Positions 1 through 32,685 of a stretch of 64,000 nt of DNA are shown one piece after another. The stretch's first letter is position 1. Every line of letters begins with the position of its first letter. Position numbers and translations under genes: made by a program. Source of the stretch: Octopus sinensis (lineage: Eukaryota); contig NC_043000.1 of assembly GCF_006345805.1 (NCBI RefSeq), forward strand, positions 125,736,001 through 125,800,000. The letters are read 5' to 3'. The notes under the pieces were generated by a model that saw only the letters and a program-made list of their open reading frames with translations, searched no databases and was not told where the DNA came from.

Positions 1-3000
1 AACAAGTACCCCTCCTCTCTCTCTCTCGTATTTTTTTTAAACAGCATCTCCTTTATTCATCAACCCAAATGACTTTGTCAGCAGATTTTTCATTATAAAA
101 GAAAACTAACTCATTTAGTTCTCTCCTTTCTAAGTATAAAGGGTCCTTTTCAGTACAATCTCCCTCCTTCCTTCTATTCAAAGAACTATCCTTGAGTCTG
201 TTGTTTCCAAGTTTGTGTATTCCTTTTCTCTTTACTTTCTTCCACCCTTTTAATCTCTCTTGTCCCCAAATATGAATCACTCTTTCAAATTATCCCCAAG
301 TCTTTGACTTTCAATTAACCTCCACACTGATATGACTTAACCTTCACTGAAGGTGCCCAGTTCGAAATATGTACTCAACTGCACTAACCTCCAACCAGTT
401 CCTTCCCTCAAATATATCAAGGTGTCAATTATATTTTGTAATGTTTCTTGATTGGTGTGTTGCCAGTTTAACTGAAGCAGTTGATGTAATACCCTTATAA
501 TGTTTTGTCAATAGTTTTACATAGCACACAACTAGATTTGCAGTGAATTTCACAAAAAGAATAGTACTCACTGGTTCTTCTGAATATCTGCAGACCATAG
601 AAAAGTGTTTCCCCACGTAAAGGTGCCGGACTTCGGGTCACATATTACTGGGACAAATATTGTATTGTGACCCCAAATCAAAGTGCAAACTGCTGGCTCC
701 AGTTTACCAAACTGATATATAACGAATATCATCCCATTCCCTGTAGCTGGTCAGATGGTGGTAAAAAAACAAGGAGCATCCACTGTGGAAGTAATTGCAT
801 CAACAAATGCTGCCCTATTCAAAATGGATGTAAAACAGCAAAACAAAAACAAATAATAACAATAACAAGGATTTCTTACATTTCCCCACTGCTGTTTTTT
901 CAACACTTGCAACAAATAGTATCTGTTGGCTGGACATTACATGGCCAGCTGATATTTTTTTAATTTTTAAGTAACCGAAATATCATTATAGGTATTGCAC
1001 TCAATTAATTTGAAAATTTTCTAGAGGAATAACATTCACCAGGAGTTGCAGATAATTAGTTCCTTCAATTGTAGCTTTATACAAAGACAAACAGCTAATG
1101 CTGCAGGGTGCATGTACCGCAGGAGATGTGTGTATCACCAAGAAGTTTTCAGGTCAGGGTTCACATTTCTTGCTGACAGTTGTAATTTTAGTAAATTTAA
1201 ATCAAGCTGTAATTTACTCACTTCCATTGGCATTCTCTAATAGACTCCAGACAAGTTTAAAAAGGTATTTATCACAGCAGTGACAGCTATTAAATACAGC
1301 ATCTTGTGGCAATTCAGCCATTTCTATTCTTATTGAAATACATTATTTGCGTTAAATTATTACAATATCTTAATATTATCGCAACAGGTTAAAGCTACAA
1401 TTAAGCTCCATGAATACATAAACATATAAAGCACTTTTTAAACCGGTTTACCCTCTCGGCACAAATATTTTCCAAGGGTATCTTCTTGTTCCTTCTTAGC
1501 AACTCCTCAAAATGACTCTAGATTCCTAAAATGGTAATACTGCACTCCTGCTTTTGCGTATTTCCAATTGTAATTCCTGATTGACCATGAATTCTTACAA
1601 CCTCTGTATATGAAAGGTCTTTTGAGCTCCTATATTTTTCTCGTAGATAAACCATTTTTCAGCATTGTTAGGATTACAACAAACTTCGCTTCCCTTTTAA
1701 ATCAAAAAGTCTATAATCCTTGATCAGTTATTGAGTCTTTGTAAGATTCACTTAGATGCCAGTCTAAAATATCAGTTAATGGATGTTGCACTTGGCTGCT
1801 ATCAAAATCTAGCCACTAGGTAAACCTTTAATCTCTACTTCAAAAATGTCTTCTTTTTGGTTCTTCTTTCATGACCACAGATGTTGTTCTTCTCTTTTAC
1901 CTTTATGGTTTCCTTATCAAATGCATCTTTCTTTTTCCCTAAGTCCAAACTTTCTTAGTTTCTTACTTTATGCAGTTTCTTTAGAATATAAGGCTTTGAT
2001 AACTCTTACAGTGTATTGGCTGTAAAACTGTTCAATACCTGACTTCAAGATTATGAGTTCAAACTTTCTACAGCCTTTATTATGTCCCTTGTGTACTTGC
2101 CTCTCTACTGTTAAGGTGAAACTAAGTATTATTTCTACTTTGTAATTGATTATTTAGTTTAAAATGGTACCAGTTGTGGATTTATGAAAATTTGGAAAGA
2201 AAATAGGGGGGAAAATATTTCCACACAAGTTTTCTAAAGAAAAAGTTGGACTAAATATTAACGGATATCAGCCAATTATTCCATCCTTCACAATCACTGA
2301 AAACCTTATGAGATTTGCACTAAAAATATAGCACCAACTAAAACGGTTCCATTAATAATACCAGGAAAAATAAAAAAGAAAATGGCATAGAAATACATAT
2401 TTCAGGGATAATAAAACGAGTTTCATAGAGAGAATTTTTCCTAATGCTTATGCAATTCAAATTCAGCACCATTTATTGAATTCCTTTGAAATCTGCCAAT
2501 CTGTTCAACTCATATAAAATGTGATGTCCATCACATATTGAACTGCTCTAAATGGAGCCTGTCATATGCTTGGCATAAAGGAAATATTTTCCTTTTATTT
2601 CTAGTTACAAAAGTTTTCCTTTGTTTGCCAAACACCAAACTGCTATTTATTAAGGGTACTTCGTATCACAATGTATTGTAATATTCATTTTTTCGTTCTC
2701 TGTATTTTTTCCTCTCTCATTAACTTGCTATAGAATATGGCTCTTTATGTAAGAATTCCTATAGAGCTTTCTACCTTCAGTGACACATGAAATAGAAGCT
2801 ACTGTGGTTTAGAAAATTATGTCGCTGCAGTGTTTAAGCTAGATTTTGCCTAGTTTTCAACCATTTAACTGTTTATATTTTGACAATGACATTTAATCTT
2901 TCATGGCTTAGAATATAAAAGGGATGGAAATAAGAGATTGTCATGGGATTTCAAATCTAAAAGGTTATAGATTTCCAATGCCTGCTTACCCATTCTTATT

Positions 3001-3559
3001 GTATAAGAAAGATTAAATTCAATTTTCTACTTTTGGATTTAACTTTGATTTTGAAGTCCATGTATCAAGACAGAGTTTTCTATACACTGTGAAAAATTGC
3101 TCTGACACTAATATAATCGTTTTATATCTCTTTGTTATTGGTGAATTCACATTCAGCGAAGTGTCCATTAGTAACTAAGCACTACACAGCATCAGTACAC
3201 TGTTGCTCTTTTATAGGAACGGCAACCTATAATTTTCTATCACTTTCTTTGTGCCTACTTTATGTACAGTAGTAATGGAGACCTTTCTCAACTGATTCAA
3301 AGCATGTTTTATGGAAATTATTTTTATTGGTCAGTCTAGACAGGAGGATACATTTATCTAGGCAACGTTGATAGTTTAATGTTTACTTTAATTGTGGTTT
3401 AAGAGAAAACATGAGCCAGAAGAGAAAGTTGCATTGGCACGCAGTTCTATGTAGAAATAATTTAGCAAAATATTTTTATCTCTTGCGAGAAAATTAATTC
3501 TTCAAACAGAATGAATAAGTATGCCTAGTTTATGCAAGGAGCCTGTTCATCACTACAGT

Positions 3560-4080: not shown

Positions 4081-5242
4081 GAAATCAAGGTTAAAATGGT
4101 TCATCCTATACATGAGTAAGTACAGTGGCAGTGTTTTAGTTTGCAGTAAACTGATGGAGAAATATATTGCCTGAAGCCTAAAAGGCTATGTAACTCTCTC
4201 TTCCATTCATTCTGAGGAAGTATGGTCAGCAGCATTAGCGTTATTCTTGTATGTTAGTTGTCAACAAGTTGTAATGCGATGATGAAATCTCAGTGAAAGA
4301 AAATTCAAGAGAGTTTAGTTCAGTAATAGGGACTGAAAAAATAATTTATATTGTCGTTTAGACACAGGTGAATCCCAGTGGAGCAAAGCTCTGATCAAAG
4401 GCATTCCAACCATGACCGTTGTATTGAATTTTGTTAACAGAAAATAATTTTAGACCACAGTTACTCATTATTTAATTACAAAAGTACGTTGCTGTTGCTG
4501 CTAATGAATGACAGCTTACTTATTGTGCTAATGAATTTTTAATAAGACAGGCACAAATTATTAAAAAATATTTTTTTTAAAATTAAAATTCAGAAAATTC
4601 TTTTATGCAACAGCCCTCTTTGATAACTGAAATAAAATTTTATTAAATGGAGGGGACAAAACTATTACAGAGTTACGTCCCTTATACCCAATTACAGTTC
4701 CTTTTTTTATTTATTTATTCTTCCTGAACGCGCATATTTGCATATTTGAACCACCGAATTAGTGCTGTCATTTATGTTTGACAAATGATTTATTTCATTA
4801 AAATAAGATTATAATCTTCATGCATTTTTCATCTTACTGCAATTATCTTTGAAAAATTAATACTTGAGTGAGTGTTTGTGTGATGCACTTGTGTGCATTG
4901 AGCACTTTTGATGAATGCCTCGCTCTGATTAATTATGAAACATCCTGTGGGATACTTTGGTGTCTTGTTACTGAGGGTGAGCGTATGTGTGTGTGTGTGT
5001 GTGTGTGTGTGTTTGTTTGTGTATTTACTCTACATAACATATTGTCTGCTTTGTTTTTGTTTTATGTAAAAACAGTTAAAAATTCTTATAACACCTGTGA
5101 GTGTATATGTGTATGGATGTGTGTGTGTGTGTATATATTTGTTTATATTACACACACACATATACACCTACAATTCTTTTTACAGTGCACTTTCTCTTTG
5201 CGTTTTGCTGACACACAGTTACAGATTATTTGAAAACACCTG

Positions 5243-5280
<38 letters not shown>

Positions 5281-5395
5281 GAAGCTTCAACTTCTAAGGA
5301 AATATGCACACTCTTTATATTGAGTACTTCAAACACCCATGTTTGGAAATACACACATTCAGATATGCATATAGTATGTGTGTACATATGTATGT

Positions 5396-5454
5396 CCATG
5401 TATATATATATATATATATGTGTGTGTGTGCGTGTGGTGTGTGTATATATATAT

Positions 5455-7045: not shown

Positions 7046-7180
7046 GATATTGACAACTTGATGAATGAAGGTAACAAATCCAGAACTGTAGCAGCAACTA
7101 ACATGAATAGTGAGAGCAGCCGCTCTCATGCTGTCTTTAACATAATTGTCACTCAGACACTTGTTGACAGTGGGTCAATG
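7046..7180 (+). CDS. KIF13: Internal coding exon (phase 0-0, 45 codons) of a kinesin-3 KIF13A/B (Khc-73-like) motor domain, including switch I
   Basis: Seen: polypyrimidine tract plus TGTAG acceptor ending at 7045 and ATG|GTAAGT donor at 7181. Translation is [45 protein letters not shown]. Established: NxxSSRSH is the kinesin switch I motif, and [14 protein letters not shown]...[15 protein letters not shown] resembles KIF13 more than KIF1 ([20 protein letters not shown]). Confidence 0.92.
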
Positions 7181-9840: not shown

Positions 9841-10165
9841 GAATAATAAAGTAATAATAATAATAATATTTTAAAAAGGATTGACATAACTCTTAACAAA
9901 GGTAAACAGTCAAGATGAAGAGTGCGATTCAATTGTAATGGATATTTTATTGGTCGAATGATATTTCAACAGTTAGTCTGTCTTTGTCAAGTTCAAAATA
10001 AGAAGTGATAAAAATTCAAAATTATAGAAATTTAAATGTAAAGTATGAACAAGAGCAACCAGCATCCACACATTGATGGAATGACATCATCAGTCTCTAA
10101 GTTTCAATTTTATAATAGGTGAAAAGAAAAAGACAGAAAAAAATAATAATAATAATAATAATAAC

Positions 10166-10381
10166 AATCCTTTCTGCTGGATGCACAAGACCACAAATTT
10201 GTGGGGAGGGGATTAGTTGATTACATCAACCCTGGTACTCAACTGGTACTCAGTTTATCGACCCTGAGAGGATGAAAGGCAAAGTTGACCTCAGTGGAAT
10301 TTGAACTCAGAATTAAGCAGCAGACGAAATACTGCTAAGCATTTCACCTGGTGTGCTAACAATTCTACCAGCTCACCACTT
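10166..10381 (-). mobile_element. SINE S1
   Basis: Homology to the other S1 copies; (AAT)n flanks. Confidence 0.8.
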
Positions 10382-10412
10382 TAGTAATAATAATAATAAT
10401 AATGATAATAAT

Positions 10413-10626
10413 TATTTCTACTATACATACGAGGCATGAAATTTGTTGTGAGGGGGCTAGCCGGTTACATGGACACCAGTGTTCATCTGGTACTTTATTT
10501 TATTGACCCCAAGGGGTTGAAAGGTAAAATAAACCTCAGCAGCATTTGAACTAATAACTCAAACAACTAGAAGGTATGTTGCTAAACATTTTCACTGATT
10601 CATTAACAATTGTCAGCTTGCTGCCT
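10413..10626 (-). mobile_element. SINE S1 (older)
   Basis: Diverged homology to S1. Confidence 0.7.
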
Positions 10627-13529
10627 AGTAGCAGTAGTAGTAGTAGTAGTAGTAATGATTATTTCTTAATTTGCAAATCTTGAAATATGTTACACTGAAA
10701 TTCAATAATGTAGACTACTATGCCAATTAGCTGTAAACTGCATGTGGTCTATCTATCTATCTATCTATCTATATATATATATATACACACACATCTTTAT
10801 CTATATCTATCTCTTTATATATCTATTTATCTATATCTATTTCTCTATCTCTCTATCTATCTATTTATTTATCTATATATATACACACACACATATAATA
10901 ATAATGATAATTTCTGTTGATTCATCAATTAGCAATAACTCAATAATTAAATGTAGTCAATAACTAAATGTAGAGTAGTCTTCAATACATCTCCCTCACT
11001 CATCATTCACTACATCCAGTTCTCTAACCATCTGTCACTCTCTTCTCACATTCTTATGAAATTACCCATTCTTTCCTTGATCTCTGATCCTCAATCCATG
11101 TTCCCTCTTCTGGTCACCTTCTTGTACCTTGACAGTTTGCTCCTGCATCCTGCCACCTCCATCTTTATCTTTCTTCCTGCTATTCTCACCTGCCTTCACA
11201 TAACGTGGAGTAGTCATATATTTCCTCTCTAGTAAGTGACTTGAATTTGTCTTTTAATCATACTTTAGCTTCTCAATGCCTGGCATAAAGCCACCCTCTA
11301 TTTTCTCGTACACTTTCTTCAGTCAGGAGGACCTTTTCCTCTCTGTACATTGTCTTGCAAGTTGCCTGGTGAAAAAAAAAAGGCACCCAGCATGCACTGT
11401 AAAGTGGTTAATAAGCATTCAGCTGTAGAAATTATGCCAAAGCTGAGATTTGAATCCAGAGCAGCTCTGAGGCATGTTGGATCCTGTCACACTGTCCAAC
11501 CCATGCCAGTATGGATCATGGACATTGAACAATGAGATTATGACATTTTTAACTGAAACATTCATGATTTTCAGTACCCTTACGATTAACATTTCCTCTG
11601 TTTCAGTTGGTAATCTGATACTGTTTCCTCTCGAATAGTCTGTTGTTTGAATATATCTTGAAATATACAAAGGCTCTCAAGAAAATGCTTATTTTTATGT
11701 TTTAAAAAAAGTTATGCAAGTGATATGTGTAAAAACAGCTGTTTCAAGCTCACATTTTACATTTTCATTTCTAGCTCTTATGAGAATATCCAAACATATC
11801 CTGTCTAATTTATCACTGCATTCAGCTTGAAACCTCATACAAGGGAGGTCACTCTAAGAACTCTCGTCTTGTGAAATTGCATTGTTTAAGCAATATTTTC
11901 AGAACATTTTGAGAAAACAGTTCAAAACCAACCTTTTCATACTCCAAATTAGGTTGAAAATTATATATAATAAAGACATGAATCCTCCCTAGAGCTATGC
12001 CCCTATTACTCCTCTATCACTCACTCCCCTTATTTATCTCACTGTATTATGCTGTCAGTATGACTAAGGATTGCAGCAGTTCTCTCTGCTGTTAGCCAAA
12101 CATTGCTCCCTTTTGTAAGGTAAGGACCTTTGTTTCTTATCCTCTGCTCACCATCCTCTGTTTGCTTTCCTTCATCCATACCCATTGCTTATCTCTCAGT
12201 CACCCCCTCCTCTCCTCAATTCTCATTATACTATGCTCCTGTGGGACTGAAAATGGCAGTGGACCCCTTTTGTTTGTCATACATTGCCTGTAGTTAGGAC
12301 GTCCCTTTATCTATTCTGACCCTCTCTCTATTACTCGTCTGTGCTACTTATTGGTACCAAACCAAACTACTTTCCATTTACCATGCCGCTATGTACATCA
12401 CTCAATCCCTCTGGTCCTTTCCGTAACCTCTGTGTAGATAGCAGCATTAGACCACTTTGTGTCAGCATTCATCCAGATTGCATTGAGCTGGCTCCAACCA
12501 ACAAGTTCACCACGTCCCTTACAAATGCTGACCACATCTGACAATCAGCTGTGGTGGAGACTGTAATGGATACCCTCTCCTGGTTCCACTGCCAAAAACC
12601 ATAGATGCAGGGGTCCAATTGTACTTCCACACCCACCTCTGACATTACCAGCCATGTCTTCAGTTGGCCTTCAACTTATTTGAAGTGAGTTGGCAGAACC
12701 ATTAACATACCAGACAAAATGCTTGACAGTATTTCGTCTCTCTTTACATTTTGAGTTCTAGTTCCACCAAGGTTAGCTTTGCCTTTCATTCTTCAGGGTT
12801 GATTACAAGAAAAAACCCCAGAATTATACCACTTGTACTAAATTCACTCTACCTTCATCCTTAACATCCTATACTGCTTGTCTTAAACTTCTGTCACTCT
12901 GCCAGTATACTCCTGCTTTTTCTCCAACACATCTTGGGCCACTGTCTTCCCTTGCTCTGTTGCTTGAGTTTCATGAACTACTGACACCACCCTACAATCT
13001 CAGGATGAATACATTCATGCTGCTGTCACTTTTGCATCACACTCTGTAACGAGGCAGATGAGTGACCCCTGAAATTGTAAGTTTGTCCATTTAGTTATGA
13101 GTAGGGTGTGGCTACCTCTCTAGTGTAGCATCAAGAAAAATGCACTCAGTACACTGGATAAAGTAGTTGGTGTTTGGAAAGGTGTCCAGCTATAGAAAAC
13201 TAACCAAACTAAAACTGAGGAAGATAAGGTCCCCCGACCCACCTAGGGGAGCAGATCTATCCAACCCAACCCAATATTGATAGTGGGTGTAAAACAATGA
13301 TATGTATACGTATGTACATATGTACACACACAGAGAAAAAAAACTTATCCTTTCTTCCTTATTCCTATCCTTTACATACACCTTCCTCCTCTATTTTTTC
13401 CTTTTTTTTTTTTGCTGCTACTCATCTACCCTCATCTTTTCTCAACTATATTTCTGTTTCATCAAACTTTAGCCTCTCCTGTCATCTCTAGAATCACCAT
13501 ACACACACACACTCTCTCTCTCTCTCTCT

Positions 13530-21876: not shown

Positions 21877-24054
21877 TCAGACACTAACTGTTGGTACATA
21901 TTTAAGCTTATCTTTCTTTTCATCTTCACTATCATCATCATCATCATCATAATCATCATCATCATCATCACTATCCAACCATTTCTTAGAATTATATGAC
22001 AAAGCAGATGTGTATGTGGGAGATGTTAAATATTGGTTTGTTGTTTGTGTTGAAGAATCTGCATTTGAAAGGCTAACTAACTCTAACTTGTCTCTGGCAA
22101 GCCACAAATATTCACTTTCCCTATTGGTTTTCATCTTTGAAAACTGTTTGTTCAGCTCATCCATGACAAGAGCTTCAGCAATACTGTTCTCTTGCATTGG
22201 TGAGACTGATTTATACTTGTTTTCAATCTGTTGTTCTTTCTTTGCTTTGTCTTTTATATGACAGATAAGACACACTACTGGGCCAACAATTAGCCAGATG
22301 GCAATTAAACAGCCCATTCCAATACCAAAACCAGCACTGAGTGTCAACGTTTTGGAAGGGTTTTTTTGGGTCGACACATCAGTTTGGGGTGTAACATTGT
22401 CTGTTGGTTCTTTAGGGATTACTTGCTCTGTTGATTCAACTGAAACCAACTCCTCATCTGAGCAACATTTGCAGTTGGCATCATCAGAACAAGGTTTTGT
22501 GCACAGATGTGTCATTTTAGAAGGGTCCAAAGTTGCAGTGGCACTTAGAATAAGATGCTTATTTTTTGTTTTTAAAGATAATGCTGCAGTTGCTGAAGTT
22601 GGAGTAGAAAGAACAGGTTTGAGAAATCCATGTTTAGTTGGTGTTGGGTGTGTGTGTTGGGAATTGGTTGGCACAATAAGTATATCTGGTATCATTTCTG
22701 AGGGTCTCAAAAATTCTGTTGTCACTGCAGCCAACATTTTCCCATTTAAACCCTTTTTAGTAAACTCTTTGATTTTGTTTGTAACTAAGGGTTTATGGCT
22801 TTTGGTGGTTTCTGAATCTTCTGTTAGATGAAGCAGACCACTTCTTGAAGGCATCAGAGTAGGTTTTATTCCCTTTTGATGATGATGGGAATGAACATCT
22901 AAGGATAATATATTCCTTGGTGGTCGTTGTGTACCATATTTAGGTGGGTTTGTATAGGGTAAGTTTTTACTATCATATTTTCTTCTCGATGACCCATACC
23001 GTATATGGGTGCTTGGTGCTGGTTGTGCAAGTGGGGGTAAGTTTGGATCAAAATCTTCACTTGTTGACAGGGATCTTTCTTTAGTTTGAGAACCTTTCAA
23101 ACTGCTTTTGTCATTTACATTTAAAAGGAACGGTGGCTGAGCTAAATATTCTGGGATATCACTGGAATTTGCCTCTTTGAGAGGCATCTCCTCAGTTGTT
23201 GAATAGTTTTCAAACTGAGTTTCATTAATAAGTGTTGTCAAGGTACTTAGTACAGGTGTAGGTGTTAACAGAAGTATTACTCTATCAGGTTTATGTTGTG
23301 GATCTGTTTTCAACATAGCATCTGAAACTGTCTGTTGCAATGTTGATGATTGTATCGTATTATCAGCTATAGACATTTTGTTTGTTGTCATAACTGAGTG
23401 CAAAGATGTTAGAACTGGATGCTTTCTTTTTTCATTGAAATTATCCTGACTAGTCACTGGATTCTGTTGATCAAAAGATGAGCTCTTAAGTGGCGGCTGG
23501 CCTGAAACCATAACATTTTCAGGTGAAACCTTACTCAACTCTGGAGTTTTTACAGAACTAGAATGTATTCCAAGAGCACTTATCTGGCGCCACTTGCTAG
23601 AAAATCTCGAATCTTGTTTAGTCTTCATGTCTCGAAGTGACAGATTTAAATGTGGACTATAATTCTTCCGTTCTTTATGTTTACTATAAGCCCACTGATA
23701 GTTGTTGTTGTTGTTGTTCTGCTGATGGTATTTTTTAGAATGTAAAGGTGTTTCTGTGCTTGCAGCTATCAAATTTGGGAGGTCATTAAGTGCCAGCTGT
23801 TTATCTTTAAGTGCTGGTAAATGATAACTTGCTGTTTCCATTACCCTGAAAAGTTGAACATTCTTGATTCTATTTGGAAAGCCTTCTGTCGTAATTGGAA
23901 TTTTGTTATATTGCACTGACAACGATTTGGAGTTCATTGCCGTTGTCGTTTCTTGATAATGTTCAGCTGAACATAGTGTATTATAACACAATAGTAAAAT
24001 ATTAATCCAGCATGGAAAGTGTTTGGAAAATACTTTGTAATCCATTCTTGACAT
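21877..24054 (-). CDS. 725-aa single-pass type I membrane protein with mucin-like S/T/P-rich ectodomain; no family recognised; whole CDS in one exon
   Basis: Seen: 2178-bp stop-free ORF in AT-rich DNA, with an in-frame TAA four codons upstream of the ATG. Hydrophobic N-terminus (WINILLLCYNTLCSA|EH) looks like a signal peptide. Sequons NLS, NET, NYS, NSS and NVT. Cys cluster CTKPCSDDANCKCC. Transmembrane segment LSAGFGIGMGCLIAIWLIVGPVVCLIC followed by basic KDKAKK. Acidic tail ends PTVSV. AATAAA overlaps the TGA stop and recurs at 21859-21864. Confidence 0.88.
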   Translation of the reverse strand: MSRMDYKVFSKHFPCWINILLLCYNTLCSAEHYQETTTAMNSKSLSVQYNKIPITTEGFPNRIKNVQLFRVMETASYHLPALKDKQLALNDLPNLIAASTETPLHSKKYHQQNNNNNNYQWAYSKHKERKNYSPHLNLSLRDMKTKQDSRFSSKWRQISALGIHSSSVKTPELSKVSPENVMVSGQPPLKSSSFDQQNPVTSQDNFNEKRKHPVLTSLHSVMTTNKMSIADNTIQSSTLQQTVSDAMLKTDPQHKPDRVILLLTPTPVLSTLTTLINETQFENYSTTEEMPLKEANSSDIPEYLAQPPFLLNVNDKSSLKGSQTKERSLSTSEDFDPNLPPLAQPAPSTHIRYGSSRRKYDSKNLPYTNPPKYGTQRPPRNILSLDVHSHHHQKGIKPTLMPSRSGLLHLTEDSETTKSHKPLVTNKIKEFTKKGLNGKMLAAVTTEFLRPSEMIPDILIVPTNSQHTHPTPTKHGFLKPVLSTPTSATAALSLKTKNKHLILSATATLDPSKMTHLCTKPCSDDANCKCCSDEELVSVESTEQVIPKEPTDNVTPQTDVSTQKNPSKTLTLSAGFGIGMGCLIAIWLIVGPVVCLICHIKDKAKKEQQIENKYKSVSPMQENSIAEALVMDELNKQFSKMKTNRESEYLWLARDKLELVSLSNADSSTQTTNQYLTSPTYTSALSYNSKKWLDSDDDDDDYDDDDDDSEDEKKDKLKYVPTVSV

Positions 24055-24208
24055 TCTTTCGTTTTATTTGTCAATTTTTTCAAATTAATTTCTTCCTTTT
24101 ATTTATTGAAGCACATTTTTTCTGAGGCACTATTATATCGTTTTTGTTTTCTTGGTCTTGTTTTTTCTTTTTCTTCATCTGTGCTTCCTCTATCGTTAAA
24201 TGTCGATT
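24055..24208 (-). other. 5' UTR portion of the nested gene's coding exon, starting at a strong splice acceptor
   Basis: The minus strand reads ctttttctctttcag|aatcgac at 24209/24208, 154 nt upstream of the ATG. It contains upstream ATGs. Confidence 0.7.
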
Positions 24209-25683
24209 CTGAAAGAGAAAAAGTAGAAGTTAGTGACTAGGGCTCAGAGTTATGTTCGAGTTAATGTTTTTTTAAAAAAAAAAACAGTTTGTAGATAAAG
24301 TACAGGTTTTGTTGTGTGATTTTGCTAACACTTTTTTTTAATTTTGATAGTAGCCTTTCTTCTTTAGAAGCTAAATATCTACTAGCTTTTTCTAATCTCT
24401 GCCTTTCTCTCTCTCATTCACACACGCACAGTGAGTGATAGATAGATAAGGTAACAGTCATGAAATATATGTTAATTATTTTGACTTAATTAGAAATATA
24501 TCTAGGGGGAACACCAACTTAAAACTTTGAAAGAGAGATGGAGAGATTATCTTTAATATGTCATTGATTTATCAATTTTAATTAATTGCACATCCTAATC
24601 ATTGAGAATTTATCACTCATTAAAATCATTAGATCCTTGAGTACCATACTTTTGCTATTAAAGAGAAATGTATGTTCTTTCTGAGAGAAGCCTGATTTAC
24701 ATAGCTATATTTTAGCAGGAAGAAAAGGAAGAAATTGTATTTGCATATTCTTGGTAATGTAAGTGAAGGCAGCAGTGCTAGTGGTTTTCATTACCATCAC
24801 CCCTCACCAACACTGACTTTAAAATTTCAACTACTTCGTCTAAATTGAATAAGTTAAACAGTTTTAAAAAGTCTAGATATGATATATAATATTTTATATG
24901 GGAGAAATAAGCTAGAATACTTAAAGTATCTCTTCATCTCTGTTGTTCCTTACTGGGAAGAGGTACACAAAAGATAGTGAACAGTACTAGTCAGGCTTTT
25001 AACAATTGAATATAAAAATTGTTTTGTTTCTTTCTTGTGTTTATTATAATTTCTTTTATCATTTCTTTTCTAGATAAGACAATATTGAATTAAACTTCAA
25101 ATAGAATATATGGCTTCCATTTGTGAAACGCATTTATTTTAATGTTGACCTGAAATTTCTTCTGTCTATATTAGCATATTTACTGAATTCCATGGAGATT
25201 TCTATTGTTGAGGAAAATGAAAACTGGAAAAAAAAAAATAATAATAATGAAGAATAATAAAAATATTCGCAATGCTAAAACCAAATTTCATATTTTCTTT
25301 ATTCTCATGTTCTGCTTTACCAACTAAATATCAGATAAGTCAAGTCTATCTTTGGTAGCTTTACTATTTTAACTATTAAATGGAAATCTACAGCAAATAT
25401 ACTTTCTAGCAGATGTGTAGTAATATCTAAATAAATAATGATTTTTCACATCAACAGTAACAAACCTAAGGAAAATGTTTTTAAAAAATAGCTTATGCTC
25501 TTTTATTCTCAGTGGAGAAAGGTATTTGTTAAGCTTTGAAATAGAATTCCCTTTGATAAAACCCTGCTTTTTATCTTGTACTTCATATAAGTAACCCGAT
25601 AAACATTGAACTCTATTGAACGACATTTCTTTCTTTTTTTCCTTTTATTCTTTATTTTTACATACATACATACATACATACAT

Positions 25684-27853: not shown

Positions 27854-27908
<55 letters not shown>

Positions 27909-28489
27909 AATGCTGTTGACTTGGAAGGTTATGGGGATCATGGCAACATACCTCACTTCTCCATCTTAGAAGTAGGAAAACCTGACAGGAAAACATTGTT
28001 ACACAAGGTTTAAATGCAGCAGTAGTAGAGGTGGGTGTTTAGGTCAGTGACTTATTGTTTGACCTGCAGGAATTTACGAAGTCATACTGCTATTGATAGA
28101 AGATCTTTGCTAAACATTATTAGACTTCAGATGTTTCAAGCACACACACACACAGTGATTCAAAACCCCCTTTAGCGTTTTCGTCTTCTATAACATTCTG
28201 AGACTAAGACTTGCATTTTGAGCTAAGCATGATGGTTAATAATAACACTTGGAAGCATATAGCTATATATAACCACACACACACATATATACATGCGTAC
28301 ATACATGTGTATATGTATACTTTTTATTTTTAATCAAATTGTCGCTTTGGTAAGTGCCATGTACAAAACCCTTGGCCTTTGATTCACTTTTAGAACTTTC
28401 TGTTGTTAAAAATAATAAAAGAAATATATACTCATGTACTGAATTCTATTTCACCTGTTTGTTGTACCAAACCTATATATATATTACTG

Positions 28490-28690
28490 AGATGTACTTG
28501 CATAGCAAGTGACCTGATCTGAGAACATGTGCTAAAGCAAAAACAATTGCAGCGTGGAAGGTGTTTATAAGCCATTTAAAAACACACAAAAACCGTTAGA
28601 TTCACTCAACATTTAAATTTAGTTTGTCAAAATATTTCCGTCGCTTCAAAGGCCGTGCCCTGTTCACTGACAAAATTCCATGCTGCATAT
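28490..28690 (-). mobile_element. Probable Penelope-like retroelement terminal fragment carrying HHR-B (second copy at about 30433-30630)
   Basis: Non-coding repeat-like segment ending in a minimal hammerhead. Established: minimal type I hammerheads are typical of Penelope-like element termini. The family assignment is inference. Confidence 0.4.
28623..28674 (-). ncRNA. Hammerhead-like motif with G3-C8 swapped core (HHR-B, copy 1), probably degenerate
   Basis: The minus strand reads UUUGUCA-GUGAACA-gggcacggccuuugaagcgac-GGAA-AUAU-UU/UGACAAA. Stem I is a perfect 7 bp, the core is GUGAACA instead of CUGANGA, and stem III is the palindrome AAUAUU. Stem II has mismatches and A13 appears as G. 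Confidence 0.55.
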
Positions 28691-28779
28691 ATATATATAT
28701 ATATATATAAATATATATACACATATATATATTGTATTAATTAATAGTAGGAGATGGATTCATATTAGACTTTTATTAG

Positions 28780-28824
28780 GTACAACATATGTTTCAACTC
28801 ATCAGTTTGGGTATCTTCAGGTAC
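28780..28824 (-). ncRNA. Minimal type I hammerhead ribozyme (HHR-A, copy 1)
   Basis: The minus strand reads GUAC-CUGAAGA-U ACCC AAACUGAU GAGU U-GAAA-CAUAUG-UU/GUAC. It has both core strands, stem I GUAC/GUAC, a short stem II with one C.A mismatch, palindromic stem III ACAUAUGU and a GUU cleavage triplet (cut between 28784 and 28783). Confidence 0.75.
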
Positions 28825-28866
28825 ATTGATAAAGAAGTCTCATTCAGAGATTTTTATTATATATAT

Positions 28867-29190
28867 CGGAGACCCCACTTCGGTCACGAATGACCATGAG
28901 ATTGCACCTAGAATGTTACCCTCCGAGGCACAAGTCCGGAAGACCAACAGTTGCCCATACATACCAGCCTCCCCTCTCCATGCCACCAAGGTTATCCAAG
29001 GGAAAGGCAAAGGCCAATACAGCTTGGCACCAATGACATCGCAACTCATTTCTACAGCTGAGTGAACTGGAGCAACGTGAAATAAAGTGTCTTGCTCAAG
29101 AACACAACACGCAGCCCGGTCCAGGATTCGAACTCACAACCTGACGGTCGTAAGTTCGATGCTCTAACCACTGAGCCATGCACCTTCACA
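28867..29190 (-). mobile_element. SINE S2 (second copy at 30807-31130)
   Basis: A box TGGCTCAGTGG and B box GAGTTCGAATCC on the minus strand; homologous to 13811-14152. Confidence 0.85.
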
Positions 29191-29799
29191 TTATATATAT
29201 ATATATATGTTTGTATTACATCATAGCCTTCCCTTAGATATGGACAACTTGTGTGTGTATAACTGATTAGTATTTGCTTTTTGAACTATTGGTCATAGCT
29301 GAAATGTCAGTGTTGTTCTTTTGACTCAGATTAGCCCTGATCAAGCAGAGCCTCAGATCAAAGTTGTTCCAACCAGGATAATCTCAACCTCTTCTACGTG
29401 TATCAAAGACTTCATAATCCAGTGCATCATTTATATTTAAGATGATGGAGCTAGCTACAAGGAAGATTTTACTACTATTTCTAGTATACCGAGCCGTCAT
29501 ATCGTTGAATATTCATCATCATTCTTAATAATAAAATCTGGTTGAGCAGTGTTTATCATCTTAGATAGAAAGCATTATTACTTTTCCGCTTATATATATA
29601 TGTATATATTCGTGTGCCAGAAACTGCTGTTACTGTAGTAGTTTCTTTGTAACACATTTTAGCTTCAACTAGTTGTCAGTTTCTATAAATGGTAGTTTAA
29701 TTTTCAATAGGTATCTCTTATTTAGTCATGTACACGTTCAGGAAACAAGGTGATTCTTATGGCGAACTTAGCACAAGAAAGCAAGAACTCTTTCCTCAT

Positions 29800-29851
<52 letters not shown>

Positions 29852-30565
29852 AATGCTGTTGACTTGGAAGGTTATGGGGATCATGGCAACATACCTCACT
29901 TCTCCATCTTAGAAGTAGGAAAACCTGACAGGAAAACATTGTTACACAAGGTTTAAATGCAGCAGTAGTAGAGGTGGGTGTTTAGGTCAGTGACTTATTG
30001 TTTGACCTGCAGGAATTTACGAAGTCATACTGCTATTGATAGAAGATCTTTGCTAAACATTATTAGACTTCAGATGTTTCAAGCACACACACACACAGTG
30101 ATTCAAAACCCCCTTTAGCGTTTTCGTCTTCTATAACATTCTGAGACTAAGACTTGCATTTTGAGCTAAGCATGATGGTTAATAATAACACTTGGAAGCA
30201 TATAGCTATATATAACCACACACACACATATATACATGCGTACATACATGTGTATATGTATACTTTTTATTTTTAATCAAATTGTCGCTTTGGTAAGTGC
30301 CATGTACAAAACCCTTGGCCTTTGATTCACTTTTAGAACTTTCTGTTGTTAAAAATAATAAAAGAAATATATACTCATGTACTGAATTCTATTTCACCTG
30401 TTTGTTGTACCAAACCTATATATATATTACTGAGATGTACTTGCATAGCAAGTGACCTGATCTGAGAACATGTGCTAAAGCAAAAACAATTGCAGCGTGG
30501 AAGGTGTTTATAAGCCATTTAAAAACACACAAAAACCGTTAGATTCACTCAACATTTAAATTTAG

Positions 30566-30617
30566 TTTGTCAAAATATTTCCGTCGCTTCAAAGGCCGTG
30601 CCCTGTTCACTGACAAA
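30566..30617 (-). ncRNA. Hammerhead-like motif with G3-C8 swapped core (HHR-B, copy 2)
   Basis: Identical to 28623-28674, shifted by 1943 bp. Confidence 0.5.
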
Positions 30618-30719
30618 ATTCCATGCTGCATATATATATATATATATAAATATATATACACATATATATATTGTATTAATTAATAGTAGGAGATGGATTT
30701 CATATTAGACTTTTATTAG

Positions 30720-30764
30720 GTACAACATATGTTTCAACTCATCAGTTTGGGTATCTTCAGGTAC
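30720..30764 (-). ncRNA. Minimal type I hammerhead ribozyme (HHR-A, copy 2)
   Basis: Identical to 28780-28824, shifted by 1940 bp within the tandem duplicate. Confidence 0.7.
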
Positions 30765-32685
30765 ATTGATAAAGAAGTCTCATTCAGAGATTTTTATTAT
30801 ATATATCGGAGACCCCACTTCGGTCACGAATGACCATGAGATTGCACCTAGAATGTTACCCTCCGAGGCACAAGTCCGGAAGACCAACAGTTGCCCATAC
30901 ATACCAGCCTCCCCTCTCCATGCCACCAAGGTTATCCAAGGGAAAGGCAAAGGCCAATACAGCTTGGCACCAATGACATCGCAACTCATTTCTACAGCTG
31001 AGTGAACTGGAGCAACGTGAAATAAAGTGTCTTGCTCAAGAACACAACACGCAGCCCGGTCCAGGATTCGAACTCACAACCTGACGGTCGTAAGTTCGAT
31101 GCTCTAACCACTGAGCCATGCACCTTCACATTATATATATATATATATGTTTGTATTACATCATAGCCTTCCCTTAGATATGGACAACTTGTGTGTGTAT
31201 AACTGATTAGTATTTGCTTTTTGAACTATTGGTCATAGCTGAAATGTCAGTGTTGTTCTTTTGACTCAGATTAGCCCTGATCAAGCAGAGCCTCAGATCA
31301 AAGTTGTTCCAACCAGGATAATCTCAACCTCTTCTACGTGTATCAAAGACTTCATAATCCAGTGCATCATTTATATTTAAGATGATGGAGCTAGCTACAA
31401 GGAAGATTTTACTACTATTTCTAGTATACCGAGCCGTCATATCGTTGAATATTCATCATCATTCTTAATAATAAAATCTGGTTGAGCAGTGTTTATCATC
31501 TTAGATAGAAAGCATTATTACTTTTCCGCTTATATATATATGTATATATTCGTGTGCCAGAAACTGCTGTTACTGTAGTAGTTTCTTTGTAACACATTTT
31601 AGCTTCAACTAGTTGTCAGTTTCTATAAATGGTAGTTTAATTTTCAATAGGTATCTCTTATTTAGTCATGTACACGTTCAGGAAACAAGGTGATTCTTAT
31701 GGCGAACTTAGCACAAGAAAGCAAGAACTCTTTCCTCATTCTCTCTCTCTCTCTCTCCCTTACGCTCTCCTCTCTCTCTATCACTCTCTCCCTCTCTCTC
31801 TTCCTTTCTCTCAATAATAGATTCATACCTGATTATAAAAAAATTTGCATAACTGATGAAAATATTGATAATTTTTCAAAAAATTTACACACACAACAAT
31901 GCATAAAATGCATGTTTATCATCATCACCATTTTGTACATTGGTGTGAAAATACACACACACACACACATGCATACATATCTCACACACACACACACACA
32001 CACACACAAATGTAAAAATATGAGTATTCAAATGCAGAAACATAATGTGCACATACATATGTACACATCATATATACACATACTTACAAATAAAAAAAAT
32101 ATGATATTATATATAAAAATATAAAAATAAAATGTGTATGTATGTACATAATCATAAATGCACACACACCTTATTTAAAATGTATTTAGGGTCATGCTTA
32201 AGATTTAACAATTTCCATATTTCCTCTGCTTTGATTCTGCTTAAATGGGTATTTGTACTTGCAAACCAAGTGATGTATGCTGCTGAAAATTTGATTCCAG
32301 CTTAAGTGGTCCCTGTTTCCAGGACTTAATGTAGGTCAGGTTCATGTTAATGACAGGATCCAATTGACAGTTAAAAGCCTTTCTCATGAACTTCAGTGGG
32401 GAAAAAAAAATACACTGTTTCTATTATATAGCTAATGAACTTTTGTTTTGTTTTTTTCAAGATATTTTTTTTCTTTGTGAGTTTTTCTTAGTCTTAAAAG
32501 AAAATATGGACATTTTTGTCCATCTTCACAAACTCACATGCACACACACACAGAAATACAAGATTAACTCATACACTAAAGATCCCACTTCTGAATCTCA
32601 ATAAATCATGCATATGTACTCTTGAATGCATACATGCATTCATGGTCTCTTATGTGCACATAGAACTATGCAGTTTCTTCCTCCA

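Follow-up and report, generated by a model that had tools for sequence, protein, structure and literature searches.

A gene nested antisense in a KIF13 intron of Octopus sinensis probably encodes a membrane glycoprotein-like member of an old, uncharacterised family

Here we describe a gene on the minus strand (21877–24208) of a 64,000-nt stretch of the Octopus sinensis genome (NCBI RefSeq assembly GCF_006345805.1, contig NC_043000.1, positions 125,736,001 to 125,800,000 of the forward strand). This stretch is referred to below as the window, and its own coordinates are used throughout. At a rough probability of 0.75, we conclude that this is a functional gene of one non-coding 5′ exon and one coding exon, lying antisense in a KIF13-type kinesin-3 intron and encoding a type I membrane glycoprotein-like product of an old family. 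By sequence it is the cephalopod representative of this family, which is uncharacterised and occurs in molluscs, annelids and a nemertean. The elements that define the gene and its host in the window are as follows.

7046..7180, plus strand: host exon of 135 nt, preceded by AG and followed by GT, phase 0, encoding the kinesin-3 switch-I region (SSRSH); from splice sites read in the sequence and PDB matches
21877..24054, minus strand: complete coding sequence in a single coding exon; from the listing of open reading frames and comparison with O. bimaculoides
24055..24208, minus strand: putative 5′ untranslated part of the coding exon; from sequence reading and the acceptor of the cuttlefish orthologue

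The coding exon holds an ATG-to-TGA open reading frame (ORF) of 725 codons plus the stop, at the length and strand given by a first-pass annotation of the same DNA, and the runner-up ORF in the 64-kb window reaches 193 residues and lies within a microsatellite. Because the G+C content of the window is about 34%, which makes stop codons frequent, chance cannot account for 725 codons without a stop. Chromosome CM046604.1 of O. bimaculoides aligns collinearly with the window at about 90–96% identity, intron included, so the raw nucleotide identity of the ORF (96.4% versus 94–96% in its flanks) says little. Within its 2.18 kb, the ORF differs from that of O. bimaculoides by 2 indels, one of 6 and one of 3 nt, which leave the frame unchanged; the 4.07 kb of aligned flanks contain 38, most of them of lengths not divisible by three. 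At the flank rate about 20 would be expected, an approximately ten-fold depletion. Comparison of the two octopus species gave 41 synonymous changes at 465 sites and 37 non-synonymous changes at 1704 sites, a ratio of non-synonymous to synonymous rates (dN/dS) of 0.235, indicating constraint. For two more distant cephalopod orthologues (P0002 and P0003) the ratio was 0.27 overall, the N-terminal half giving 0.38 and the C-terminal half 0.13; the full ranges obtained for the halves are 0.27–0.38 and 0.13–0.20, respectively. The ORF is uninterrupted at 724–729 residues in four cephalopod species. The octopus ORF is under purifying selection.

Transcription and splicing of the gene can be followed in cuttlefish. 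Two short Logan contigs, L003 and L004, encode P0003 and carry the orthologous ORF with its untranslated regions (UTRs), and the source of L004, SRR19578103, is an RNA sequencing run of juvenile Sepia esculenta (PMC9538352). Against L002, the genomic contig of P0002, L003 falls into two blocks, 5–581 to 4841–5418 and 582–3454 to 9903–12791, and the 4,484 nt between the blocks open with GTAAGT and close with TTTCAG when read on the ORF strand. Because of this two-block alignment with GT..AG bounds, the orthologue is a spliced mRNA. In Sepia esculenta its 5′ exon is non-coding and at least 577 nt long, a single further exon carries the coding sequence, and the 3′UTR measures about 630 nt. The claim of a gene with a single coding exon is thus supported jointly by dN/dS, indel depletion and this spliced mRNA.

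In the octopus, a splice-acceptor-like ttttctctttcag ends at 24209, upstream of the ATG, with the polypyrimidine/AG acceptor spanning 24209–24220; therefore 24055–24208 would be the 5′UTR part of the coding exon. The proven acceptor of the cuttlefish orthologue lies 98 nt upstream of its ATG. Position 24208 is the first base past the acceptor-like sequence, which explains why the first-pass annotation had taken it as the upper end of the gene. An upstream ATG in this 5′UTR part opens a Lys-rich ORF of 33 codons (approximately 24079–24177, minus strand) that closes before the main ATG. Antisense to the coding sequence there is also a 177-residue ORF (22298–22831, plus strand), which the codon composition of the true gene most simply explains without a second gene.

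The relatives of the octopus protein extend well beyond cephalopods. A first, word-based search returned O. bimaculoides LOC106874696 (95% identity) together with two proteins at about 40%, 724 and 729 residues long, the orthologues from Sepia esculenta and from another relative, probably a decapodiform; the C-terminal halves of the cephalopod orthologues are strongly conserved. A profile of this C-terminal half, scored with hmmsearch against 1.84 billion representative proteins, gave 25 matches with E values down to 1e-12. Those from outside the cephalopods cover profile positions of about 187–305, that is, the transmembrane helix and the first part of the tail. Comparison of profiles by hhalign related the cephalopod module to the annelid/other group with a probability of 99.7% (E 4e-25) and to the other molluscs with a probability of 99.6% (E 5e-24). 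The named members, all uncharacterised proteins, come from the bivalve Argopecten irradians, the gastropods Gigantopelta aegis and Haliotis rubra, the annelids Lamellibrachia satsuma and Paralvinella palmiformis and the nemertean Tubulanus polymorphus. A chimeric single-sequence query found the P0018 subgroup only, adding Paralvinella and Tubulanus. The description of the gene as a lineage-specific orphan is contradicted by these homologues.

What the family shares is a compact module. Nearly all aligned members carry the transmembrane signature G-x-(G/A)-x-x-(G/A)-(C/S)...W...(G/C)-P-x-x-C-x-x-C followed by a basic stretch; the exceptions include the bivalve sequences, which are without the Trp. 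The fuller pattern reads G-I-(A/G)-x-G-C-h-h-x-x-W-h-h-x-G-P-x-V-C-h-x-C-(R/K)-x-(R/K)-D-(R/K), and after the basic stretch come an acidic amphipathic helix, h-(E/A)-(E/A)-h-h-x-x-E-L, a Tyr and E-[IL]-x-x-L. The octopus protein has both parts, the transmembrane and juxtamembrane signature as GFGIGMGCLIAIWLIVGPVVCLICHIKDKAKK and the cytoplasmic helix, Tyr and E-[IL]-x-x-L as IAEALVMDELNK...EYLWLARDKLELVSL. The module is kept across phyla, and the ectodomain is unalignable outside each class, every class having its own conserved islands. Ordinary searches miss the family because the ectodomain evolves so fast.

Several other results belong to these searches. The nearest non-coleoid homologue is P0004, a Logan transcript encoding 704 residues (E 1e-12), which has the ectodomain motif LMPSRS and the tail motif ALAKDRSELENL in common with cephalopods and could derive from a basal cephalopod or another mollusc class. 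A fungal match (P0023, Trichoglossum, E 5e-4) covers the transmembrane stretch only and was rejected as a false positive. A word-index search with alignment A2 returned nothing; it missed the known orthologues too, which marks a failure of candidate selection and not evidence. A literature search for LOC106874696 or for a gene nested in KIF13 found nothing relevant. As far as our searches show, the family has not been described before and keeps a deeply conserved place in one KIF13 intron; it might reach past Spiralia through members that have diverged too far for these searches.

Known families were sought with Pfam and PDB searches, and the earlier failure to recognise one held up. In Pfam the octopus protein matched no family above threshold, Podoplanin (PF05808) reaching 11.3 bits (E 0.44) against a gathering threshold of 30 bits; weak Podoplanin matches recur in the relatives at up to 18.5 bits over the stalk and transmembrane region. 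CD34_antigen (PF06365) gave no match at E<=10 in the octopus protein or at E<=1 in ten relatives, and sequence and profile searches of the PDB gave no meaningful match to the octopus protein. The Pfam matches to EphA2_TM, RIFIN, TMEM154 and Podoplanin obtained with the octopus protein and ten relatives were rejected as sub-threshold and as transmembrane or low-complexity hits. In the octopus protein, a regular expression found no PLAG-like motif, Pfam found no transposon domains, and none of the LNS domains, cadherin domains or heparan-sulphate sites of neurexin-, syndecan- and calsyntenin-type ectodomains was detected.

The host of the gene is identified by its exon at 7046–7180, whose best PDB match is KIF13B residues 194–235 (E 1e-14) versus KIF1A (1e-12). 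By this exon, the octopus host is most probably a KIF13-type kinesin-3, and the assignment of the guest to the antisense strand of a KIF13-type intron is supported, the exon being on the plus strand and the gene on the minus strand. The next host exon (GEKVSK.SLVDLAGSER) was not found in the window; because of this, the host intron exceeds 56.8 kb, with the guest 14.7 kb inside it. The orthologous ORF of O. bimaculoides falls wholly within an opposite-strand gene with a 2232-residue product, for which a Pfam look-up gave no record. Only the Gigantopelta, Argopecten and Tubulanus hosts show the full Kinesin, FHA, KIF1B, DUF3694 and CAP_GLY architecture.

The same nesting recurs in other phyla. 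The Gigantopelta, Argopecten and Tubulanus homologues are annotated antisense inside genes with Kinesin, Kinesin_assoc, FHA, KIF1B, DUF3694 and CAP_GLY domains, and that of Haliotis falls within a gene whose product has 2104 residues. Fetched flanks were scanned with four kinesin exon peptides. The SSRSH exon lies 3′ of the guest on the opposite strand in Octopus (14.7 kb), Lamellibrachia (6.6 kb), Tubulanus (2.4 kb) and contig L010 (2.1 kb), and the (S)GEKVSK.SLVDLAGSER exon lies 5′ of it in Gigantopelta (6.1 kb), Haliotis (5.1 kb) and contigs L009 and L010 (9.9 kb each). On L010 both exons are present and bracket the guest gene. In every case with a host exon in the fetched flanks, the guest occupies the one SSRSH/DLAGSER intron, the octopus included; no host exons were found in the O. 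bimaculoides flanks or in the decapodiform flanks, which extended 10 kb. Because the same flanking exons are found across molluscs, an annelid and a nemertean, the guest has been in the switch-I/switch-II intron of KIF13 since before these groups diverged, in the Cambrian or earlier. The shared intron is therefore positional evidence of orthology that is independent of sequence similarity.

Cephalopods, annelids, the nemertean and two further contigs have one undivided coding exon; in gastropods and the scallop the coding region is split into two or three. In Argopecten irradians, the KIF13 intron region holds a second gene on the strand of the guest (L006, 22426–25281), with an 898-residue low-complexity product that has an N-terminal hydrophobic segment and is without the transmembrane/tail module of the family.

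The encoded protein can be divided as follows, all on the minus strand.

23962..24054, minus strand: residues 1–31, N-terminal leader, putative signal peptide; from hydropathy and by-eye judgement
22948..23961, minus strand: residues 32–369, fast-evolving low-complexity S/T/P/K-rich ectodomain; from composition, sequons and alignment A1
22336..22947, minus strand: residues 370–573, membrane-proximal ectodomain; from alignments A1 and A2
22462..22503, minus strand: residues 518–531, cysteine cluster C-x3-C-x5-C-x-CC; from the Cys positions
22261..22335, minus strand: residues 574–598, transmembrane helix AGFGIGMGCLIAIWLIVGPVVCLIC; Kyte–Doolittle peak 2.63
22060..22260, minus strand: residues 599–665, conserved cytoplasmic module; from distant-homologue matches
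21919..21987, minus strand: residues 690–712, KKWLDSDDDDDDYDDDDDDSEDE, Trp followed by an acidic Ser-containing cluster; from the cephalopod alignment
21880..21894, minus strand: residues 721–725, C-terminus PTVSV; invariant in four cephalopods

The leader has a hydrophobic core, CWINILLLCYNTLCSA, followed by a small-x-small cleavage-like site (C-S-A) and then E, and a hydrophobic N-terminus is common to all four cephalopod sequences. The ectodomain spans 549 residues with 11.5% S, 10.6% T, 8.4% P and 8.7% K. Its six N-x-S/T sequons are at residues 131, 137, 277, 283, 296 and 553, five of them within residues 32–369, a part that is poorly conserved in A1 except for the island NLIAASTE (residues 94–101). 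The first-pass annotation had called the protein mucin-like. This holds loosely for composition (S+T about 22%, S+T+P about 30%) and fails for tandem repeats rich in proline, threonine and serine, none of which was found by Tandem Repeats Finder; only short (GAT)n and (AAC)n codon runs, encoding poly-Asp and poly-Asn, were present. The membrane-proximal motifs TQRPPRNILSLD, PSRSGLLHLTED, KPLVTNK, LAAVTTEF..SEMIPD, TAALS and LILSATATL are invariant in cephalopods, the last of them opening a longer conserved stretch, LILSATATL.PS.MT..CT.PCS....C.CC. All five cysteines of the cluster (518, 522, 528, 530 and 531) are invariant in A1, with the spacing C-x3-C-x4-C-x-CC in the two decapodiform relatives.

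The transmembrane helix combines a G-x-G-x-G-x-G face (GFGIGMG), an invariant Trp, a mid-helix Gly-Pro and a C-x-x-C at its cytosolic end. The two juxtamembrane cysteines, C595 and C598, are candidate palmitoylation sites and are followed by the polybasic HIKDKAKK. In the tail of 127 residues, HIKDKAKK is succeeded by the helix SIAEALVMDELNKQF, the conserved Tyr (EYLWL) and DKLELVSL, and the cephalopod tails keep EYL(W/L)L, a YxxΦ pattern, and DK.EL. The KKWLDSDDDDDDYDDDDDDSEDE stretch (K-W-(L)-D/E-S-D, then a long acidic run) is present in four of four cephalopods and unseen in other family members; we take it to resemble calsyntenin-type W-acidic kinesin-light-chain-binding motifs and CK2/acidic-cluster sorting signals. 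The terminal PTVSV is identical in all four cephalopods while the residues before it vary. Having Val at −2 and 0, this end resembles a PDZ ligand of class II type (hydrophobic-x-hydrophobic) and not one of class I. A class I D-T-x-V/L terminates most of the annelid, nemertean and unassigned sequences, and the gastropod and bivalve members belong to neither class, except for a class II-like LLL end in Gigantopelta. The protein topology drawn in the first-pass annotation thus agrees with these details: the putative signal peptide, the sequon-bearing S/T/P/K-rich ectodomain of about 540 residues, the cysteine cluster, the GFGIGMG helix, the juxtamembrane Cys and Lys and a tail of about 120 residues are all found again.

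These features allow us to propose how the protein might work. We suggest that a cleavable leader would direct it into the secretory pathway, where the ectodomain would be N- and O-glycosylated and remain largely disordered. The transmembrane and cytoplasmic module would anchor and sort the protein by palmitoylation of the C-x-x-C and by helix-mediated docking, and in cephalopods the YxxΦ motif, the acidic cluster and PTVSV, which may bind a PDZ scaffold, could serve as additional sorting aids. The variable glycosylated ectodomain may act as a surface spacer or ligand, as in sialomucins. The whole would then be a scaffold-tethered, sialomucin-like surface protein whose conserved tail controls trafficking and position, and the function as a receptor-like protein or cell-surface glycoprotein put forward earlier is plausible. 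Most simply, the nesting would have been retained because relocating the guest would break the host.

Other explanations have to be set against a functional nested gene of an old family. An intron rich in repeats and microsatellites, with many spurious ORFs, is a setting in which a non-functional frame might arise by chance, by decay of a pseudogene or from a transposon, and the 96.4% identity of the ORF to O. bimaculoides is barely above the 94–96% of its flanks; dN/dS of 0.24–0.27, the indel depletion with both indels in frame, a frame intact at full length in four species, the spliced cuttlefish transcript, the lack of transposon domains and a position conserved across phyla make this next to negligible. 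We regard as very improbable that the gene is an octopus- or cephalopod-specific orphan without relatives elsewhere. The absence of a Pfam family, a word-based search that returned cephalopod-like sequences only and an ectodomain unalignable beyond cephalopods would agree with it; however, the transmembrane and tail profile matches gastropods, a bivalve, annelids and a nemertean at E values down to 1e-12 with hhalign support of 99.6–99.7%, the named mollusc and nemertean relatives lie antisense in KIF13, and two gastropods, Lamellibrachia and Tubulanus share the very intron. A very divergent member of a known sialomucin family, either podoplanin or CD34/podocalyxin/endoglycan, would fit the repeated Podoplanin matches of 11–18.5 bits over the stalk and transmembrane region, an architecture that recalls the CD34 family (mucin-like region, Cys cluster, stalk, transmembrane helix, acidic tail and PDZ-type end) and the D-T-x-L/V ends of many non-mollusc relatives, similar to DTHL and DTEL. 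Against such a kinship, which we consider improbable, the Podoplanin scores stay far under 30 bits, there is no PLAG motif, the tail has 127 residues versus about 9, CD34_antigen is unmatched at permissive E and PDB profile searches are empty. We know of no W...GP..C..C transmembrane motif in podoplanin or the CD34 family.

A further reading accepts the old family and couples guest to host: KIF13 would carry the membrane protein as cargo or use it as a cargo receptor, linked through PDZ/MAGUK or another adaptor on the conserved tail. We think this unlikely, and likewise hold it unlikely that the pair has formed a unit for more than 500 million years, its nesting kept by selection for shared or mutually exclusive expression. 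Occupation of the same intron in three phyla would suit a coupled pair, as would the class I PDZ ends of most non-mollusc members and the invariant PTVSV of cephalopods, and the cephalopod Trp-acidic stretch recalls kinesin-1 light-chain-binding motifs. According to a preprint, KIF13B is activated when the MAGUK DLG1 binds its MBS domain (bioRxiv 10.1101/2021.10.14.464392), which makes a scaffold-mediated link between guest and host imaginable. However, Dlg usually prefers ends other than the class II type seen in cephalopods, and the PDZ-type end is missing from most gastropod and bivalve members. For synapsin and TIMP, another nested pair, we know of no demonstrated protein-level coupling. 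Nested pairs of this type nonetheless persist across Metazoa (PMC2825198). A functional tie between the guest and KIF13 is possible.

Several observations weigh against the functional nested gene of an old family that we favour. No kinesin exon lies within 10 kb of the homologues at L011 and L013 (Paralvinella), and several homologues are metagenome or SRA contigs. Expression is demonstrated in cuttlefish only. A similarity comparison with the cuttlefish 5′ exon gave no conserved match in the window, and neither the octopus 5′ exon nor the 3′ end was located there. The C-terminal motif, as read from the sequences, is not uniform across the family. AlphaFold2 produced no confident fold for the conserved C-terminal half or the full protein (mean predicted local distance difference test scores of 35 and 30, with alignments of 3–4 sequences); such uninformative models are compatible with disorder without proving it. 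The signal peptide, glycosylation, palmitoylation and PDZ binding are predictions from sequence.

The intron around the gene has features of its own. A non-coding block at 24800–25599, 0.6–1.4 kb upstream of the coding exon, is better conserved relative to O. bimaculoides than the coding sequence, with 17 differences in 800 nt and none in 25000–25199 and 25500–25599; the neighbouring intron has 10–30 per 100 nt. This block may hold a promoter, a non-coding first exon or an enhancer. A tandem duplication at 27897–31549 consists of two adjoining copies of about 1.9 kb, each matching single-copy O. bimaculoides sequence (29192–29848 pairs with 27897–28484, and 31132–31549 with 29840–30427). Microsatellite tracts of the (TA/TG/CA)n type at 5.3–6.8, 15.3–15.6, 17.3–17.8, 41.5–42.4 and 58.2–60.9 kb yield most of the other ORFs longer than 100 residues (YIYIYI..., CVCVCV...), and interspersed intron repeats recur with peptide signatures such as EFKFHQGRLCLSSFQGR.

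The supposed octopus orphan is thus the visible tip of an unrecognised family in molluscs, annelids and a nemertean. It provides a clear case of a nested antisense gene deeply conserved in one specific intron, for which synapsin–TIMP is the comparable textbook example. The KIF13 switch-I/switch-II intron offers a positional handle for finding more orthologues, and the position allows one to ask whether nesting persists by function or by genomic inertia. If guest and host were coupled, selection on coordinated or mutually exclusive transcription would explain why the gene never left the intron. For cephalopod biology, the gene adds a conserved, expressed candidate surface glycoprotein with a well-defined cytoplasmic docking module.

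Among described proteins, podoplanin has PLAG motifs (E-D-x-x-V-T-P-G), about 160 residues and a cytoplasmic tail of about 9 residues. The octopus protein resembles it as a type I mucin-type glycoprotein, and Podoplanin is the only Pfam model with repeated weak matches (11–18.5 bits); unlike podoplanin, it has 725 residues, a 127-residue tail and no PLAG. With CD34, podocalyxin and endoglycan it has in common a glycosylated low-complexity ectodomain, membrane-proximal Cys, one transmembrane helix, an acidic tail and a PDZ-type end. The CD34/podocalyxin end is D-T-x-L, whereas that of octopus is T-V-S-V, with some non-cephalopod relatives ending in DTAL, DTNL or DTEV, and the W...GP..C..C signature and the EAhhM.EL helix are specific to the new family. 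Short cytoplasmic motifs of the neurexin/syndecan/calsyntenin type link membrane proteins to scaffolds or motors. The likeness is short: a single pass, a hydrophobic-x-hydrophobic C-terminus and a Trp beside an acidic run.

As a genomic arrangement, the closest parallels are other nested genes. EVI2A and EVI2B (and OMG) are vertebrate-specific small genes nested antisense in an NF1 intron. They likewise have a single coding exon and encode type I, partly mucin-like membrane proteins within the large intron of a big host; no relationship in sequence to the octopus gene is expected. The synapsin–TIMP pair, the closest parallel, has been kept across Metazoa though its guest diverges strongly in sequence (PMC2825198). 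Like the gene described here, TIMP is a secretory-pathway guest that runs antisense within an intron of a host with a neuronal or trafficking role and is retained across phyla. The KIF13 pair differs in its host and guest families, its guest being a membrane protein of no described family whose conservation, in one identical intron, is shown within Spiralia (molluscs, annelids and a nemertean).

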